64,000 nucleotides of DNA from Prasinococcaceae sp. CCMP 1430 (taxonomy: Eukaryota; Plantae; Prasinodermophyta), in the NCBI GenBank assembly GCA_013416795.1, contig RQSC01000005.1, forward strand, positions 264,733-328,732. Direction: 5' to 3'. The notes under the pieces were generated by a model. It did not search any database. It was not told the DNA's origin and saw only the letters and a list, made by a program, of their open reading frames with translations. The stretch's first letter is position 1. Every line of letters begins with the position of its first letter. The position numbers and the translations under genes are program-made. This document shows positions 24,564 to 46,900 of this stretch, piece after piece.

Positions 24564-25839
24564 GCTCGCGCGCGAGCCGGCCGCCCGCCGGAGTTTTTCG
24601 CCCCTCGCGCACGGAACCAAACACCTAATACACGCCCTCGCCGCGACGCGGGAGAGGCGCGGGGACTCGCTGCTGCGCGTGCGCCGCGCCCCTGCGGCGT
24701 GCCGCGCATTCGCTAGTCCCTCCTGTAGCGTAACGTAATCACTGTACGAGTACCTCTGGCTCCTCCTCGGAGACACCGGTCATGCTCGGGGAGGACTGCC
24801 ATTGCGCGGCGCGCGATGAGCGCGATGGAGCGCACACTGCGGCGGCGCGCTCCGCGCGATGGCTGGCCAGCACGTGGCGTCGTGGAGCTGCAGCAGCTGC
24901 TACGACATCACCCCGAGCGACGGCATCGAGCTCAGTGCGCTCTCCCCCACCGAGCGTGCGTGGCGAGGCGCGACGCGAGAGGTCGCTGGCCACGGCTCGT
25001 TGGCACGCCTTGCCGCCGAGGGCGGGTCGCCTCCTGGCGCGCGCGTCGCGGCCGCGTGCGCAGCCATCGTCTCGCTCCCGCCGGCCTGCGCTCCCGGCTG
25101 TCCCTCCGCGCCCCTCTCGCCCCCGGTCGCCCGCCATCGCCCCCCCCCCTCCTTTCCGCCCCACTCCCACTCCCCCCGCTCCCGGTCCCGCCGGCCCTCC
25201 CTGTCCGTCGGCCGGTCGGTCGGAGGACCGCCCAATTCGGCCCCGCGGGACGTCGTCCCCGCCTGCGTTTCCGCAGGGCCGCCGCGCGCGCGAAACTCCG
25301 GGAAAATCCCGCGCAGGCGAAGGGGAGCGCGAGCGAGAGCGAGGACCCCGACGAAGTGCGCGCGCGCGCGCCCGCCCGCCACCTGCGCTTCTCCGCCTCC
25401 GCGTTGGGTTTAGGTTTGGATTATTTGCGGTCAGCCAGGGAATCAGGGTGCGCGCCTTGGGCGCGCGCGCGCGCGCGCGCATGCGCGTTGATGGGGCGCC
25501 GGTTGGGCGCCGGCATGCTCTCTTTCTGCACTCAAAAGTTCTTTACGTGTACTTTTGATTCGAACCTCTCCACACATGCGCGCGCTGATGACGAGGATGC
25601 ACCTGTCGTCCGACGAACGTCATCAGAATACACTCTATTTTGTGATCGGAACGGAAATGGGAAATGCGAATGCGGTATGGTGGGGCGCATGCATGCGCGA
25701 GTGGTTTAGGTTTGTATTGTTTGCGGTTGGCTCGTGGGGTAGGGTGTAGCGGACATTGGCTGGCGCATGCGCGTTGATGGCGGCGGCGGGGCCCCGCGCG
25801 CGCGCGCGCGCGCGCGATCCCCAACGAGCGGCCCGCGCG

Positions 25840-25903
25840 CNNNNNNNNNNNNNNNNNNNNNNNNNNNNNNNNNNNNNNNNNNNNNNNNNNNNNNNNNNNN
25901 NNN
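25840..25903. other. Assembly gap in the 5' region of the beta-carotene hydroxylase gene
   Basis: Run of n. Confidence 0.99.
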
Positions 25904-26820
25904 CGGGTGTGCCGCAGCGGCGCGCTCGCCGCGCCCGGTGCGCGGCGGTGCAGGCGTCGCCGAGTGGGCAGCAAAACAGGGCGCCCGAGGGCGTGCCCGC
26001 GTCGGGCAGGGCGCGCGGAGAGGAGCGCGCGGTCGTCGCGCGCGCCGTCGCGGGCATCGATGCCCCCGAGGTGGCGCAGTCGGCCGCGGAGACGATGGCG
26101 GCCGAGGAGCAGAAGGCGGCGCTCCGCGCGAAGCGCGCGGAGCGCGCCGCGCGTCGCAAGACGCAGCAGAACGCCTACCTGGGCGTGGCCGTCGCGTCCA
26201 CCGCCGCGATGACGCTGGCAGTGGCCGGGGTGATCTGGTGGCGGTACACGCGTGAGGGACTCCACGGCGAGAGCGGCGTTGAGCAGTGGGTGGAAATGTT
26301 CGGCATATTCGGCCTTACGTGCGGCGCGGCGTTCGGCATGGAGCTGTGGGCGCAGTGGGCGCACGACAAACTGTGGCACAATTCGCTGTGGTCGTACCAC
26401 GAGAGCCACCACAAGCCGCGCGAGGGCATGTTCGAGAAGAACGACGTCTTCGCGCTGGTGAACGCCCCGATTGCGATCGCGCTCGCGGCCTACGGCTTCC
26501 TCAACGACGGCTTGGGGCCGGCCATGTGCTTCGGAGCGGGTATGGGCATCTCGCTCTTCGGCATGAGCTACATGTTCGTGCACGATGGCCTCGTGCACAG
26601 GCGCTTCCCCGTCGGCCCGCTTGGCGACGTCCCATACCTGCGCAGAGTGGCGCTCGCGCACAAGATGCACCACTCGGAGAAGTACGGCGGCGTGCCGTGG
26701 GGCCTGTTCCTCGGCCCGCTCGAGCTCGAGGCGGTGGGCGCCAAGGAGGACCTCGACCGCATGATGGCTGCGCAGACGCGAGGGGACAGCAAGGAGGTCG
26801 ACCGCATCGCGGGGCTTTGA
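25904..26820 (+). CDS. BCH: Beta-carotene 3-hydroxylase (non-heme di-iron), plastid-targeted; 5' end in or near the gap
   Basis: WAHDKLWH, HESHH, NDVFA, YMFVHDGLVHRRFP and HKMHH histidine boxes. Confidence 0.95.
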
Positions 26821-38733: not shown

Positions 38734-40332
38734 TCAAGCGCGCGCGCGCTTTCGCGCGGCGCCGTCAGCGGCAGCGGCGCCGTCGACAGCAACGAGCGCA
38801 GAGTGCTGCCCGCCGAAGCTCACGCAGGTGACGCGCTTGCCCGCCATCCGCTTGCCACCCTTGACTTGGTACGGCGTGATCTCGTCATCATCGGCGTTAG
38901 GCGCGCTCTTCGGCTTGCCAAGCTGCATGCTCGTGTTTGAGCCCCAGGTCCAGCAGCGACCGTCCCTCGAGATCGCGGCACTCGTGGACAGGCCGCACGC
39001 GACAGCCACGACCCCGTCGATACCCGGCACCACGCCAGGCGCCCACACGGGGTCGTCCGACTCGGGGTCCACGTCAGTGCGCCCCAGCCTGCCGTACGTC
39101 GGCCTGCCCATGGCGAGCACCTGGCCCTGGCTTGTAACCGCCAGCGTGTGGTGCTCGCCACCGTGCAGCGTGCACACCCCTTTGCCGCTCAGCGCGTCCA
39201 CCCGCACGGGCTCGTACTTCTCGCGCCCCTCTTGCTGCACGCCCTTGCCGTCTCCGAGCTCGATCCCCAGCTGCGAGTAGTTGTTCAGCCCGAAAGCAAG
39301 CACGTCCTCGCCACACACGACGAAAGAGCAGAACGCGCCTGCAGCGATCGCCGTCGGCCTCCTGCCACCGAGAGGCACCACCGTAGGGGTCAGCGTGACC
39401 GGGAGCAGGCCCTTCACTTGGTCCTTGTCCTGCGTGTCCGAGTCCGCCTGGCTCACGCGGCCGAGGCGGCCTTTCTCCGGGCAGCCCCACGACAGCACCT
39501 CGCCGCCCGCGGTCAATGCGAGCACGTGATCGGCGCCGCTGGCGACGTCGACCACCCGGTCCGTGGCGGGGCTGGCCTTAGGGCCCGCAGTCACGATGGG
39601 GGCCTTCGCCACCTTGGTACCTGGAACGAAGCCCATCGGCCCGGACGAGTTGCGATACGTGCCCCAGCCATACACGCAGCCGTCGGCGCAAAGCGCGATC
39701 GAGTGAGAGTCGCCCGCAGTGACCTTGAGCACAGTGCTGCCGGAGGCGATCGGCACCTCCCCCGGGGTCTCCTCCGAGCCCTCGACGTCCTTGTTGGCCA
39801 CGCGGCCCAGCGCGCCCTCATCGTTGATGCCCCAAGAGTACACCACACCAGCAGAGGTTAGCGCCAGCGTGTGCATGCCACCGCACACCATCTGCGTGAC
39901 ACCGACCTCGGCGAGGGCGCCGACAGTGCGCGGCAGGTACGACTCATCGACGTCATCACCAAGGCCAAGGATGCCAAAATCACCGGTGCCGAAGGTCATC
40001 GCCTGACCCTCCGCGCCGATCTTTGCTCCCGCGCCCTCGTCCGCAGCACCTGCTACGCCGTCCACCGGCGCCTTCGCCTCGAGGGCGACGTCGGCGTACT
40101 CGGCACGCAGCTCGCGCATGTAGCGCATGTAGTCGCGGCATCCCGCCTCCCACGAATCGTGCGCTGTGTCGGCCCCACGCTGCTGCGCGCTCACCCATGC
40201 GAAGAATTGCGCATTGAGCGATCCCACCGCGCGCTTGAGCGCCGCTGCGCGCCGCGCTTCCCTGTCATCGCCGGCGGCCGCGCCGGCCGCCGCCGCCGCC
40301 GCCTTGCGTTTCGCGCCGCGAGTGCCAAACAT
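38734..40332 (-). CDS. RCC1: RCC1 (Ran guanine-nucleotide exchange factor) with an N-terminal Nup50/Nup2-like helical motif
   Basis: YSWGINDEGALGR, VTAGDSHSIAL, WGTYRNSSG, YGRLG and VSFGGQHS typify RanGEF RCC1; N-terminal LNAQFFAWV...RDYMRYM. Confidence 0.88.
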   Translation of the reverse strand: MFGTRGAKRKAAAAAAGAAAGDDREARRAAALKRAVGSLNAQFFAWVSAQQRGADTAHDSWEAGCRDYMRYMRELRAEYADVALEAKAPVDGVAGAADEGAGAKIGAEGQAMTFGTGDFGILGLGDDVDESYLPRTVGALAEVGVTQMVCGGMHTLALTSAGVVYSWGINDEGALGRVANKDVEGSEETPGEVPIASGSTVLKVTAGDSHSIALCADGCVYGWGTYRNSSGPMGFVPGTKVAKAPIVTAGPKASPATDRVVDVASGADHVLALTAGGEVLSWGCPEKGRLGRVSQADSDTQDKDQVKGLLPVTLTPTVVPLGGRRPTAIAAGAFCSFVVCGEDVLAFGLNNYSQLGIELGDGKGVQQEGREKYEPVRVDALSGKGVCTLHGGEHHTLAVTSQGQVLAMGRPTYGRLGRTDVDPESDDPVWAPGVVPGIDGVVAVACGLSTSAAISRDGRCWTWGSNTSMQLGKPKSAPNADDDEITPYQVKGGKRMAGKRVTCVSFGGQHSALVAVDGAAAADGAARKRARA

Positions 40333-40559
40333 CGCGGCGCCCGCCCGCCCTCGTGCGCGCGCGCGCGCGCGCACACCCTCGCCCGGGGAGGACGCCTGGG
40401 GGAGGAGCGATAGAAGGCGCGGGGGGACGATCGCACGGCCGAACAATCCGCCGCGCGTCGGGCGCCAGCGGGCGCTCCCGGCCCCTGGCCTGCCCGGCGG
40501 CCGCCGCGGGCTCGCCCAGGCACGCGCGCGCGCGCGGCGAGGGAGATTTCGGACTCTTT

Positions 40560-40760
40560 TTCCCCTCCTTTTTTTTTTGTGTCCCAACCGCAGCGCAACG
40601 TCTCTTGATGATGGCATCCACCGGGACCGGGGCGAAAACAAAATCAAATCAAAATCAAAATCTGTACGCACAATACCATCATGATGGTAATTAACCCTAA
40701 TCCTAGTACCTAACCCCAACCCTGATATGGACCCTATCGCTTTCAAACGCATGGGATTCC
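40560..40760. promoter_or_regulatory. AT-rich bidirectional promoter island between RCC1 and NUP188, with AAAATC repeats and a telo-box-like AACCCTAA
   Basis: AAAATCAAATCAAAATCAAAATC near 40639 and TAACCCTAATCCTAGTACCTAACCCCAACCCT near 40692, between divergent starts. Confidence 0.5.
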
Positions 40761-40967
40761 GGGGGCAATTTTTGGCGGGCGCGCGGGCGGCCGCCGCGCC
40801 ACACCGCGGGCCGCGGGGGGGCGTGCGCGCTCGCGCGCGCGCAAGCGCAGCGCGCCTCGCGAGCCGCCGCGCGGGGCACCGGCGCGAGGCCTTGGTCCCT
40901 CCCCCATCCTCCTCCCTCGCTCGCTCTCTCGTGCTTGTGCCCGCGCGTGCGCGCGTGAGGGTAGGCC

Positions 40968-43900
40968 ATGGCGGGCGTTTTCGGCTTCGGCGCCACACCG
41001 ACGGGAAAGGAGACGCCGGCGCCGCTGTTTGGCGGAGCGGCGACACCGCCTGCTGGAGGTGCAGGCGCAGCACCGCTGTTCGGTGCGGCAACGGCAACCC
41101 CTGCAGCGGCGACGACGACGACGCCCAGCGGCGCTGGCGGGGCAGGCGCAGCGCCGCTGTTCGGTGCGGCTTCGGCGGCCCAAGCTGGTCCTGCGGCTGC
41201 GCAAGCTTCAAAGGCTCCTGCCACTGTGCAAGCTGCGTCGATCAGCTTTGGTGGTGCTCAGGCAACAGGCACTGGCCCTAGCAAAGAGCCGGCCGCCGCT
41301 ACCCCCGCTGCGGCTGCTGCGGCCAACAACACCGCCGCTTCCACCCAGCCGCTGGCCGCGGCCGCTGCAAACACTGCCGCCGCGGCGCCCGCGGCTGGGA
41401 CAAACGCACTCGCCGTTCCTGCTGGGTCTGTGGGGCAGTCGGGCGCGCTGTATGATGCAACTAGTCTCTGGTGGGATCCGTTCCACCGGCTCGCAGTTGC
41501 GCTCGAGGAGGCCGTGCGGGGGCTTCGCGATGAGGTGTCTCTGCGCGCTGAGCTCGATCGCTTCGCTCGATTCCTCGCCGATCCGGCCTCTGCGTTCAAG
41601 CCGCCCTCCTCGGAGGCGCGCGCTGCGATCGCAACGACGGGCAAGTTTGGCATCAACGGCAAGGCGAAGGCGGTGGCACCAGGGCTCCGCGACGCAGCGC
41701 TGGCTGTTTCGGAGCATCTCGAGCTCAATGAGGTGCAGGCGTACGTACTGGTCGTGAGATGCTACCGCAATGGGGCCGATGGCCTCCCGAAGAGCGATCC
41801 AAGCATGCCAGAGGAATGCGCTCGTGTACCAACCCGTTGCGAGAGTTACTACTACACCGAGCGCAGGGATCTGCTCTTCGCGATATTCAACGTGTTGCAG
41901 CTGGCAAAGATGCGGACTGACATGACTGAGGCTGCGGCTGACGTTGCGGAGGACGAGGGGCGTGACGGTGACGCCCACCACAGCGCCGCGGCTGAAAATC
42001 TGGCGGCCTGCGAGGCATGCGCAGACGCCGTCGCGAAGGCGCGCTCTGCGGGCCTCGAGGCGAACTTGGCGTCCGCGCTGAAGGCGGCGCTGGGCGGACC
42101 CCCGGCGGCGCGCGCAATGGCGGCCATGGCGGGGAGTCTCCTCTCGCGTGGTGTTACGGCTGGCGTGAACGCAGCTGCTGACTGGGCTCGTGCTGCACTG
42201 CGCGAGCAGTGCCAGTTGCTTGAGATTGTGTATGCCGTTGGGCTCACGGGCCAGGACAATCTGCAGGAGATGCTCGACACGCTCGGCGCCCACGTTTTTG
42301 GAGTAGATACAAACATCGAGAGCCGTACGAGCCAAACTGCCGCTGCGGCCGCGCTCGCAGCCGCTGAAGGCGAGGCGCGCGCGTACACCGAACGCCGTGA
42401 AGCGCTGGCTGCGTGCCTGTCGTTGCAGCTTATGGGCTTTGACTCTCTCATATCTCGCATCGGCGACGAGCAGACGGGGACCTGGGAGCGAAATGTGCTT
42501 GCAGGCGCTGGTGCTGCCAACACCTGCCGTGCTGTCACCGAGGTTGTAGACATGATCGCCGAGGCAGTCTGCGACGCGGCCGTCCGCACTGGGGCGCACG
42601 CCCCCCCCCAAGCACGCGCAGTGGTCTGTTTGGGATGGGCGTGTGTGCTGCACCTGATCGAGCAGCTACCGGAGCCATTGGCGGGCCCGTTGCCAAGTCT
42701 TGAGAAGTGCGTAGAGGCTGCAACACGAGGCAGAGCGCTCGAGTGGGTGACGTCGGCATTCTCGGCTGGTGGCGCCCTGAGCACCGGCGCTGCTGGTGTT
42801 GGGGCGGGAGCGCACGAGCATTGCATGTCCGAGGATGCCCGCTGGATGATGCGCAGCGTGCTGTCGGCACACTTGGCGTCGTTTGTGATTCCAGCACCGA
42901 TCGGCGCGTTGCTCCAGCCTTGGTCTGAAATCTCGCGGACTACTGCTGCGCTGGCTGCTGTGTTGGACGGCGCTGTCGAGATTTCAGAGGACATCATGGT
43001 GGACAATAACTCTGCACCCATCAATCAACCCATCAACGCCCTGCTGCAGCAAGCACTCCGACCCTTCCCAGAAGACCCGCGGCCGATCTGCACCCTCCTT
43101 CGCTCGATGTGTGCTTCGGAGCGCTGTGCGATGGACGTCGTCTTGTATCTCGATCGCGCGCCGACACTGGCTTTGCGACATCATGTGTCCGACGGCACCA
43201 TCACCGTATCGGCCGCAGGCGGAACCGCCACTTTACTTGAGACGGTTGATGCACAGCTGGCGCCGGGAATGGTCATGCGCTTGGAGGCTCAATCGCAAGG
43301 TACCCTTCTGGGCGTCCCAGACTCAAACTCAGGTGGCAGCGCGATCGTCGCATGGAACTACCCCCAGCGGGGCATTGCTGTGCTTCTTGCCCGCCTGGCT
43401 GGTGTGATCGCTGCCATCGTCGAGGCCCGCCGAGGTGGGCATACACCGGCGGGGGAGACCGTGGAAAGTGCCTTGGTGATGGTGGACCTGCTCGAGCGCG
43501 CCGCGGGCCACAATATGGTGGTTGCTGGCCAGCTTGTGGACTGTGCGAACGCTTGCAACGTGCCTTTCGCGGCCATGATTGCATCGCTGGTGGCAACAAC
43601 TTGCGAAAGCCTGTCGACTCCCTTCCCGGGCTGCCTCGAGCTGCTCAGCGCAGCTCTCCGGCTAGCGAGTGCGCTGTCCGAGGTCGGCCCATCGAACGCG
43701 TTCGCTGCACTGACGGCCATGCCCGGCCTGATGACTCAGCAGACCGGGACGGCGCCCACCCCTCCGGTGGTGCTCATGTCCCTTGCTGCACTCGAGAGAT
43801 CCATGGGTGGGAAGTACCTCGGCACAATCGCATTTCTTGATGCCAGTACCAATGCTATGCTTAATGGTCACCGCGTCGCAACGGATGGGAGCGCGCATGG

Positions 43901-46900
43901 GGATGCGTACGCCCCTGCCATGGGCTGGGCTGCATTTGCAAACCACGTATTGAGTGCATACGCGCGCTGGCCGCACGGGCGCCGCGCGACTCGCTGGAAG
44001 GTGGCCGCCGCAGCCGTGAGATGCCTGCGCGTGGCCCTGCAAGTCGCGCCCGGTAGGGGCGACGAACTTTCGTCAGCGGCGCAGCAAATGCTGCATCCAG
44101 ATGGTGCTGCAGGGGCCGCACTGGCGGAGCTGCTCTCCGCCAAGGGAGTCGAGACCGCCGCTGAGCACGCGCTCGGCGATGGCGCTGGAGTCGCGTTCGA
44201 GGCGACCATTTGTGAGGCCCTCAAGCTGTGGACTGCACTTGCGAATGCCGCTCCTGAGGGGGCAGTCGTCGCCCCTGCCGGCCATGCTTCTGAGCGCGCT
44301 TTCGCTGCGTGCGTTGAGCATATCGCCGGGCGTTCATACGAACTCAAGGCCGCGGCGGCAAGTGCCCTCGTGAGGCTCGCGGAGCGCGCGCCTCAACGCG
44401 CAGCGCTGGCGTGCGACGCCACCAAACTCGCCGGGGAGCTGAGCGAAGCAGTCAAGGGGGGTCGCTCAACGCCACGCGCGCGGCTGTCGGCCTTTGTGCT
44501 CGAAGGGCTCCTGGACGCACGCTCCCCGCTCGCCTACAAACTTCTCTCCCCGCCTGCTGGGCCGCGCACGGCGCTGGATGCAACGGAGAGCGATGTCAAG
44601 GCTGCCAATGCTGACGCAGCTGAGGCTGCCACCTTGGCGAGGGCCGCGAGGCGAAGCGAAGCAGAGGCGCACGTGCTTCCGGCCGTGTGGGACGTTGCGC
44701 GAGGCGCTAGCGATGGTCGCGATCGCAATCTGCAGGCACGGATGCTGAGGATAGCCCTTCTATTGTGGCTCCAGGGTGACAGCAGCACTGGGGCCGCTCT
44801 GTGGATATCAAAGCAGGAGGGTGCGTGGGACAAGCTGATCGAGGCCGTCGGCCTCTCCGCGGCTTCTGCGGGCTCTCAAAACGATGTTGACAGCATTGAC
44901 GGGCGGCTGGCCGTAATGGAGGCTGCCGCTCTGCGCATTCTTGGCGCTGAGGCGGCACAGCGCCCCCTCGGTGCCAGGAATCCGACCGGGGTCCTTTCAC
45001 GCACGCTGGGCGCCTGGGGCGAAACAGGCGTCGGAAAGCTGCTCACTAGGTACCAGAGCCAGCAGCCCATTCTGGATGCCTGCGAGGCGCTGGCAACAGC
45101 TCGAAGCTGTGCGCGTTGCGTCGCGCACATGCTCGTTCCCAATGCCTTCGCCGCACGTGATGCTGGGTCGACAGGCGCGGGTCCCTCTATCCGCCCAGAC
45201 GTCGCCAAGGACCTGGTCGAGGCTGCTGAAGCGGCGTGCAAAGATGCCGGCGTCGCGCCAGGTCGCACTCGGGATTTGGCGTGCGCAGCGACTCGAGCAG
45301 CCCACGAGGGCGCTATTTTCATGGCGCAGTCGGACGTCGCCGCACGCTGGGGGTCTGAGGTTGCGGGCTACCTGAATGCGGCCAAGAGCGCGTCGCTCGA
45401 GCATGTCTTGTTGCGACCGCCGCGACGCAACGCACGTATCAGCCTCACGCCCGAAATGTACGTGTACGACATCGGGTGGCTTGAGGATGCTCTGAGGGCA
45501 TGTCACGTCTATTCTGCCGGAGCTGCGCTGGCGGAAGCTGCTAGCCTCGAGCCCGCAGAGGCGGACCGCGAGCTTGCCACGGCCGCCACCAAGGCAATCG
45601 AGGCCGCCGAAGCCGCAGGTCATGCGGCGTCGCTGGCGGACGCTCGCACGGACGCGCTCGGCGCAATGCGTCTGCTGGTGGCAGCCGCCTTGCCCATGAC
45701 TCGCTCCGGCATCGAGCCCTCCGTCGCGGACGCTGCGAACGCCTGGACGTGGGAAAAAGACGAAGCTCTTGCGCCGCTCGTGTTGCGGCAGGTGGCTGCT
45801 GCCAGCGAGGCCTGCGCCGCCGCCGCCAAGGACCCTGGGCCAATGCGGGACGCCCAGGCCATCGAGAACTCACACCTCGCCTCGCTCTTCGTGCGTGCAC
45901 TCAACAAGGAGCTGCTGTCGTCGAAGGTGTCTGCAGCGTGTGTGGGGGCGTTTGCGACAGCACTTGGCCCGCCCGAGGCGCCTGCACGTGCGCTCGATGC
46001 CCTCGCTGCCGCCACATCATCGGCTCTTGGCGTCTCACCTGCTCCGTCGCTGGAAGCTTCTGTGCTCGCGGAGTCGCTGCGCCAGCGCAGCGTCGCCAAG
46101 AGCGCAACGGACGGGGCTGGCGGCACTGGTCGCACGTTGAGCCCCGCGCTAGCTTCGTGCGTGAGCGCCATGCTTGGCGGCGGCGGTGGCGGCTCCTTGC
46201 TCGCCCTGGGGCTCGAACAGCGAAGGGGCGAGATGGGTGCTGCTCTGTCGCCGGCCCAGCGCATGCTGCGCATCAGCCGTGCGGTCGCCGTCGCGGCGTC
46301 GCGCACGATTGAAGCGGGTGACCCCTCCGCGACGGCAGCCTGGTTCATGTCCCCTGCGTGGAGCGAAGCGCTCTCGGCGGCCGCCGCGCTCGTCGTTGAG
46401 CACGCTGCTGTGGACGACGCACTCCTGGAGGAGGCCACAAGCTTCGCCGCCGCCGTTGCTGGTGGTGTAGCGTCGAGCCTGCGCATATCAGGGTGGCTCC
46501 AACGCCAGCACTACCAGGACAGTGCGTCTGCGCAGGAGTCGAAGGCAGCACACGAGGCGACGTGCAGGGCGTGCAGGCTCCTCGCAGCGATGGCGCCGTT
46601 CGCCGGACGCTGGGCGCTCCGCGCCCCAGAGGCGCTCAAGCTGGTGTCGACCGAGGCGGTTGCGCTTGTGGCTGACGCCGGCGCGGCGCCAATGCCAGCC
46701 CAATTCGAGGTGGGCACCACGGTGTGGGCGGCGCGAAAGGACGGGTGGATTGAGGCATCGGTCGTGCAGGTGGGGTCGGACAATCGCCCCCCGACCTACA
46801 CGATGCGTGCCACTGGTGCGGCGGGCGACGAGTTCGAAGTTGTGGCGTGTGAGGCGCGCGCGCGCGTGTACGGCCCCAACGGTGCCGTGGTGACCCCACA

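Follow-up and report, generated by a model that had tools for sequence, protein, structure and literature searches.

Within the window (the whole 64,000-nucleotide stretch of DNA analyzed here, from a marine green picoalga), a single open reading frame encodes a large protein of the Nup188 family in which the conserved start of the family is preceded by a low-complexity tail carrying FG motifs (see the table). The same architecture is found in two other proteins, namely, P0001, which is 99% identical to the window protein, and P0002, a 56%-identical orthologue encoded on a Tara Oceans metagenome scaffold from an uncultured relative. The Nup188 gene on the plus strand is arranged head to head with an RCC1 gene on the minus strand, and the same pair is present on the P0002 scaffold (L001:725-9379), which indicates that this arrangement is older than the split of the two species. 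Two simple-sequence elements lie in the promoter region common to the two genes: an (AAATC)n microsatellite at 40637-40662 and, at 40689-40723, a degenerate CCCTAA-like run that resembles a telo-box.

Features of the FG-tailed Nup188 gene (positions in the window)
Feature	Position	Strand	Basis
5' untranslated leader, ATG-free	40901-40967	+	run X1 contig starts at 40901
Nup188 open reading frame, 2128 aa	40968-47354	+	open reading frame list; no introns, no internal stops
FG-repeat cluster, aa 1-95, six FG: F5, F7, F21, F38, F65, F94	40968-41252	+	
Two 49-nt direct-repeat copies, 86% identical, 81 nt (27 codons) apart, each encoding a AGGAGAAPLFGAA unit	41052-41100, 41133-41181	+	
FG-free Ala/Thr/Pro-rich spacer, aa 96-166, ~70 residues, from FG cluster to folded domain	41253-41465	+	composition; pLDDT <50 to residue 158
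LWWDPF motif, aa 167-172, conserved start of plant/algal Nup188	41466-41483	+	
Nup188 N-terminal alpha-solenoid domain, aa 159-900 (modelled part)	41442-43667	+	AlphaFold, Foldseek
Beta-strand insert, aa 733-797, inside the solenoid	43164-43358	+	seven strands in the AlphaFold model

The tail (residues 1-166) consists to ~79% of Ala, Gly, Thr, Pro and Ser, and 6 of its 166 residues are charged (3.6%, versus 19% in the core). The five motifs listed in the first-pass annotation of this DNA are all in frame, VFGFG at residues 4-8, PLFGG at 19-23, PLFGA at 36-40 and again at 63-67, and ISFGG at 92-96, and so is the downstream SLWWDPF (residues 166-172, nucleotides 41463-41483); the low-complexity tail indeed lies ahead of this motif but ends at 41465, slightly past the originally assigned boundary at 41430. 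The motifs are of the PLFG/SFG type, in addition to VFGFG, and are separated by nearly uncharged spacers of Ala, Thr, Pro and Gly; GLFG motifs do not occur in the tail. The association of phenylalanine with glycine is far tighter than in the remainder of the protein: Phe is followed by Gly in 6 of 6 cases in the 166-residue tail versus 2 of 31 in the 1962-residue core. When the residues of the tail were shuffled 200,000 times, no shuffle contained more than five FG, and the tail is the only stretch with six FG per 100 residues in the six-frame translation of the entire window. Several FG dipeptides within a low-charge region that is predicted to be disordered are a feature of FG nucleoporins, and the tail displays this combination. 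The Pfam Nucleoporin_FG models yielded no match to the tail at E <= 10, and the 6-8 motifs in 95-140 residues are few compared with canonical FG nucleoporins and fall short of the repeat number and length typical of FG domains that form the barrier. The 49-nt direct repeat marks a local duplication of one PLFGA unit, and the tail as a whole has probably grown by local duplication of FG units.

A second FG-dense stretch, at ~26299 (five FG, the sole runner-up), was rejected as an FG domain: it belongs to a membrane protein similar to beta-carotene hydroxylase, with the FG dipeptides located in hydrophobic segments. The corresponding open reading frame (25756-26820, plus strand), which resembles membrane proteins of the beta-carotene-hydroxylase type (HDGLVHRRFP...HKMHHSEKYGG), includes a run of N (25840-25905) that represents an assembly gap.

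No Pfam match of the protein scored above threshold, so the family assignment was derived from searches of PDB sequences and from fold comparison. Neither Nup188_N nor Nup188_C exceeded the gathering score in searches with the full-length window protein, with three segments thereof or with the tail, and P0002 produced a sub-threshold Nup192 match alone (E = 2e-4, 19 bits versus a cut-off of 28.7); the sequence is too diverged and too compositionally biased for the curated Nup188 models. A phmmer comparison of the window protein alone with PDB sequences yielded the Arabidopsis pore chain 9sob_B (E = 1e-12) and Xenopus Nup188 (E = 0.002); Nup192/205 chains were absent from the matches at E <= 10. 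An orthologue profile constructed from the N-terminal 900 residues of the window protein and 13 plant and algal relatives matched 9sob_B (E = 0) and, over ~730 residues, human NUP188 (E = 2.8e-67), and Dictyostelium Nup188 was also among the matches, whereas Nup192/205 chains reached only 2e-5 to 6e-5, over ~100 residues. The ESM Atlas feature search returned clusters of the Nup188/Nup192 clan alone, at 0.90-0.91, which is under the recognition level for strong evidence.

The predicted structure points in the same direction. The AlphaFold model covers residues 1-900 (pTM 0.63, from a shallow alignment) and consists of helices from residue 159 onward. In a Foldseek comparison of this model with the PDB, ranks 1 through 11 are all occupied by Nup188 (E from 2e-20 to 3e-9; Arabidopsis, Xenopus, human, Chaetomium, Dictyostelium, S. 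pombe, Myceliophthora and S. cerevisiae), with Nup192 appearing from rank 12. The beta-strand insert is predicted to occupy the site expected for the Nup188-specific SH3-like domain, an insert that Nup192 does not possess (Andersen et al. 2013, PMC3679522). Over residues 1-150 of the tail, the mean pLDDT is 23-27 and there is no secondary structure, and the values remain below 50 through residue 158; the tail is accordingly predicted to be intrinsically disordered. The original identification of the protein as Nup188 is thus upheld by phmmer, the orthologue profile, the AlphaFold model and Foldseek, all of which agree, and we classify it, on the strength of sequence similarity and predicted fold, as a Nup188 orthologue, with the caveat that the curated Pfam models fall short of it. 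A Tudor/SH3-like domain that seemed to be inserted at residues ~1917-1970 was dropped: in the alignment, this region corresponds to the conserved 'SKHGWF' loop of plant Nup188. The respective beta-looking segment (46716-46877; TTVWAARKDGWIEASVV...) is retained in P0002, has an invariant Trp in common with plants and is longer in the alga than in plants.

Among the matches listed, the close relatives are P0001, which comes from another sample, and P0002. The P0002 tail comprises 193 residues, with all 8 of its 8 phenylalanines in FG (LFG, PLFG, PAFG, PTFG, PSFG, VSFG twice, and PLFG), and the sole Met ahead of its LWWDPF motif directly precedes the first FG. The alignment of orthologues, which had been proposed as a check on the hybrid, turned out in its favor: the tail is present in this 56%-identical protein, the reading frame and the FG motifs are kept, and the FG positions align with those of the window protein while the spacers diverge in both sequence and length, a pattern characteristic of FG nucleoporins. 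At the strain level, comparison of the window with the P0001 contig identified 5 synonymous and 4 non-synonymous changes in the tail, with no indels and no FG residue affected; the ratio is similar to that in the core (27 synonymous and 21 non-synonymous changes), and there are 6 changes in the 130 bases upstream. The pattern of these substitutions suggests that they are not neutral, with counts too small to prove selection.

To assess the spread of the tail, we surveyed 30 further relatives, comprising sequences of land plants, of algae (streptophyte and chlorophyte) and of metagenomes; non-plant Nup188 are too distant for a survey of this kind. Word-based protein searches, which are rich in low-complexity matches, produced at least 2 relatives with the single sequence and at least 8 more with the profile; a full HMMER scan, run over 1.84 billion representatives, produced 23, and the conserved start falls within residues 2-25 in all of those that include the N-terminus. 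None of the 30 green-lineage relatives has an FG tail ahead of the conserved N-terminus, and none exceeds 2 FG per 100 residues. In those of these proteins whose LWW-type motif is identifiable, it falls within residues 7-27; in Arabidopsis Nup188 (9sob_B), SSLWWDPF starts at residue 9. As far as the searches reach, the FG tail appears to be specific to a small clade that consists of this alga together with P0001 and P0002. The premise of the first-pass annotation that scaffold nucleoporins normally carry no FG repeats is borne out by the 30 green-lineage relatives and is in line with the statement, in a study of Tetrahymena, that Nup205 and Nup188 'do not have FG repeats', but the Nup308 protein described in the same study is a published exception (PMC5450191).

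Several lines of evidence bear on whether the tail is part of the mature protein. The ATG at 40968, in the context GCCATGG, is the sole ATG in 40850-40968 and is preceded, two codons upstream, by an in-frame TAG (40962-40964). The next Met is residue 280, with none ahead of LWWDPF, so that initiation downstream would eliminate more than 110 conserved N-terminal residues, including positions that are invariant across relatives. The RNA evidence consists of contigs, not reads, from four RNA or RNA-like runs over the region 39800-44800. In run X1, which comes from the same organism and has a transcriptome-sized assembly (its label, 'RNA?', is a guess), contigs extend over the RCC1 neighbor as far as 40329 and resume at 40901 (40901-41088, 41117-44026 and beyond); no joints are reported, and the 570-bp intergenic region (40330-40900) is represented by no real contig, just by low-complexity pieces of 19-21 nt. 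This pattern fits RNA, with the 5' end at or before 40901 and the tail unspliced and continuous with the core. Codon-position GC provided no useful separation of the tail from intergenic DNA. It is very improbable that the FG part is an artefact of the gene model, lying outside the mature Nup188 as untranslated leader, as intronic sequence or as a small transcript of its own. Such an artefact could be suspected from the reliance on contigs, from the 28-nt contig break inside the tail (41089-41116) and from the lower depth of the 5' contig (6 versus 20). However, the break lies between the copies of the 49-nt direct repeat and is probably an assembly break caused by that repeat; there are no joints, and P0002, at 56% identity, preserves both the frame and the FG motifs. 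A downstream start and a separate transcript, the two outcomes that the first-pass annotation had named as incompatible with a hybrid, were looked for as far as the contigs allow, and neither was found: the tail resides in the same open reading frame and the same transcriptome-like contig as the core, and there is no alternative start before the conserved N-terminus. With high probability, then, the FG-Nup188 hybrid is real.

A translated tail might still have little or no role in transport if it were one of the many Ala-rich low-complexity extensions of a GC-rich genome. The genome is indeed very GC-rich and its proteins Ala-rich, such extensions are common, and the core itself is 23% Ala; furthermore, the FG motifs are few (6-8), the Pfam FG-nucleoporin models do not match, and the spacers evolve fast. 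Nevertheless, the complete coupling of Phe to Gly in the tails of both species, which no shuffle of the window tail reproduces, the retention of the FG positions despite changing spacers and an overall identity of 56%, and the lack of a comparable extension in GC-rich chlorophyte orthologues (for example, P0004, P0025 and P0030) all argue against this interpretation, which we regard as rather unlikely. A different possibility concerns the target of the tail: the FG motifs could act in cis or between neighboring copies, by docking onto the transport-receptor-like FG-binding surface of Nup188 itself or onto the cradle that accommodates the Nup98/Nup145N linker, and thereby regulate assembly or keep free Nup188 soluble. 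The N-terminal domain of Nup188 has a hydrophobic cradle that binds a Nup145N peptide with Phe/Leu residues, and the 70-residue spacer would let the tail fold back; in addition, fungal Nup188 and Nup192 bind FG repeats directly and cross pores in the manner of transport receptors (PMC3679522). The AlphaFold model, in contrast, includes no docked segment, with pLDDT below 50 throughout residues 1-158, which is a weak counterargument given the shallow alignment. On balance, we regard such docking as unlikely.

The interpretation that we consider probable is that the Nup188 of this lineage gained a disordered N-terminal FG extension of ~160 residues, which would add weak receptor-binding sites in the inner ring. 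The human pore contains 16 copies of NUP188, which are peripheral in the inner ring and lie between the Nup155 layer that coats the membrane and the FG trimer of the channel (bioRxiv 10.1101/2021.10.26.465796). In the algal pore, each Nup188 copy would hold, at such peripheral inner-ring positions, a short FG brush on a tether of ~70 residues, and at the human stoichiometry of 16 copies, this would raise the number of FG motifs per pore by ~100. Transport receptors would find weak sites on the brush, which would also cohere with neighboring FG domains, so that it might locally thicken or anchor the barrier and knit the scaffold to its FG neighbors rather than form the barrier. Judging from the 6-8 FG per chain, the contribution of the tail to the barrier would be small. 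A broader proposal, which we find doubtful, is that this early-branching green lineage endowed pore proteins that normally have no FG with such motifs, whereby the scaffold joined the permeability barrier, and that the Nup188 tail may bind its own receptor-like FG-binding surface and thus couple scaffold and barrier.

Proteins of the nuclear pore are usually sorted into a rigid scaffold and a disordered FG barrier, and Nup188 is a textbook scaffold component. A natural Nup188 with an FG tail would be the second, independent case of a scaffold protein gaining barrier sequence, after ciliate Nup308, and two independent gains of this kind suggest that pores take this evolutionary route repeatedly. 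Transport is probably affected only modestly, and the finding opens no major question; six FG motifs on a 70-residue tether do, however, make a small, defined natural construct with which the FG-binding surface of Nup188 could be probed in the assembled pore.

By sequence and predicted fold, the algal protein belongs to the same family as the Nup188 of plants, animals and fungi (9sob_B; human 7r5j and 7r5k; Chaetomium 7mvw; Myceliophthora 4kf7). It has in common with these proteins the N-terminal alpha-solenoid ring and the SH3-like beta insert (both predicted in the alga) and, with plant Nup188 in particular, the conserved LWWD start motif; the overall length is also similar, with ~1950 residues following the tail. 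The difference is at the N-terminus: the known Nup188 start at the folded domain, and none of the green-lineage relatives has an FG cluster, whereas in the alga an FG tail lies ahead of that domain. We found no report of an FG-bearing Nup188 in the literature, nor a paper linking this alga to nuclear pores.

Among established FG nucleoporins, Nup62, Nup58 and Nup54 of the Nsp1 complex have uncharged FG regions rich in Ala, Thr, Ser, Pro and Gly, with an FG every ~15-30 residues, and are anchored via Nup93/Nic96, adjoining Nup188 and Nup205. Unlike the algal tail, these proteins are attached by coiled coils and contain many more repeats. The Plasmodium protein called 'Nup205' was considered as a precedent and set aside: it is an FG nucleoporin named by mass and not an orthologue. 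Nup308 of Tetrahymena thermophila, a 2675-residue protein, combines GLFG repeats (residues 1-570) with a Nup205-type solenoid (Iwamoto et al. 2017, PMC5450191); it was pulled down with Nup93, and the authors suggest that it compensates for FG-poor Nup62 and channel nucleoporins. The design is the same as in the alga, namely, a disordered N-terminal FG domain placed on a solenoid of the Nup188/Nup205 family within the Nup93 complex. The two proteins differ in that Nup308 groups with Nup205 whereas the algal protein is Nup188, and in that the FG domain of Nup308 spans ~570 residues of the GLFG type compared with ~95 residues and six PLFG/SFG-type motifs in the alga. Given that the ciliate and green algal lineages are unrelated, the FG tails were gained independently. 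The only similar case that we found is this ciliate protein, Nup308, from the sister family Nup205.
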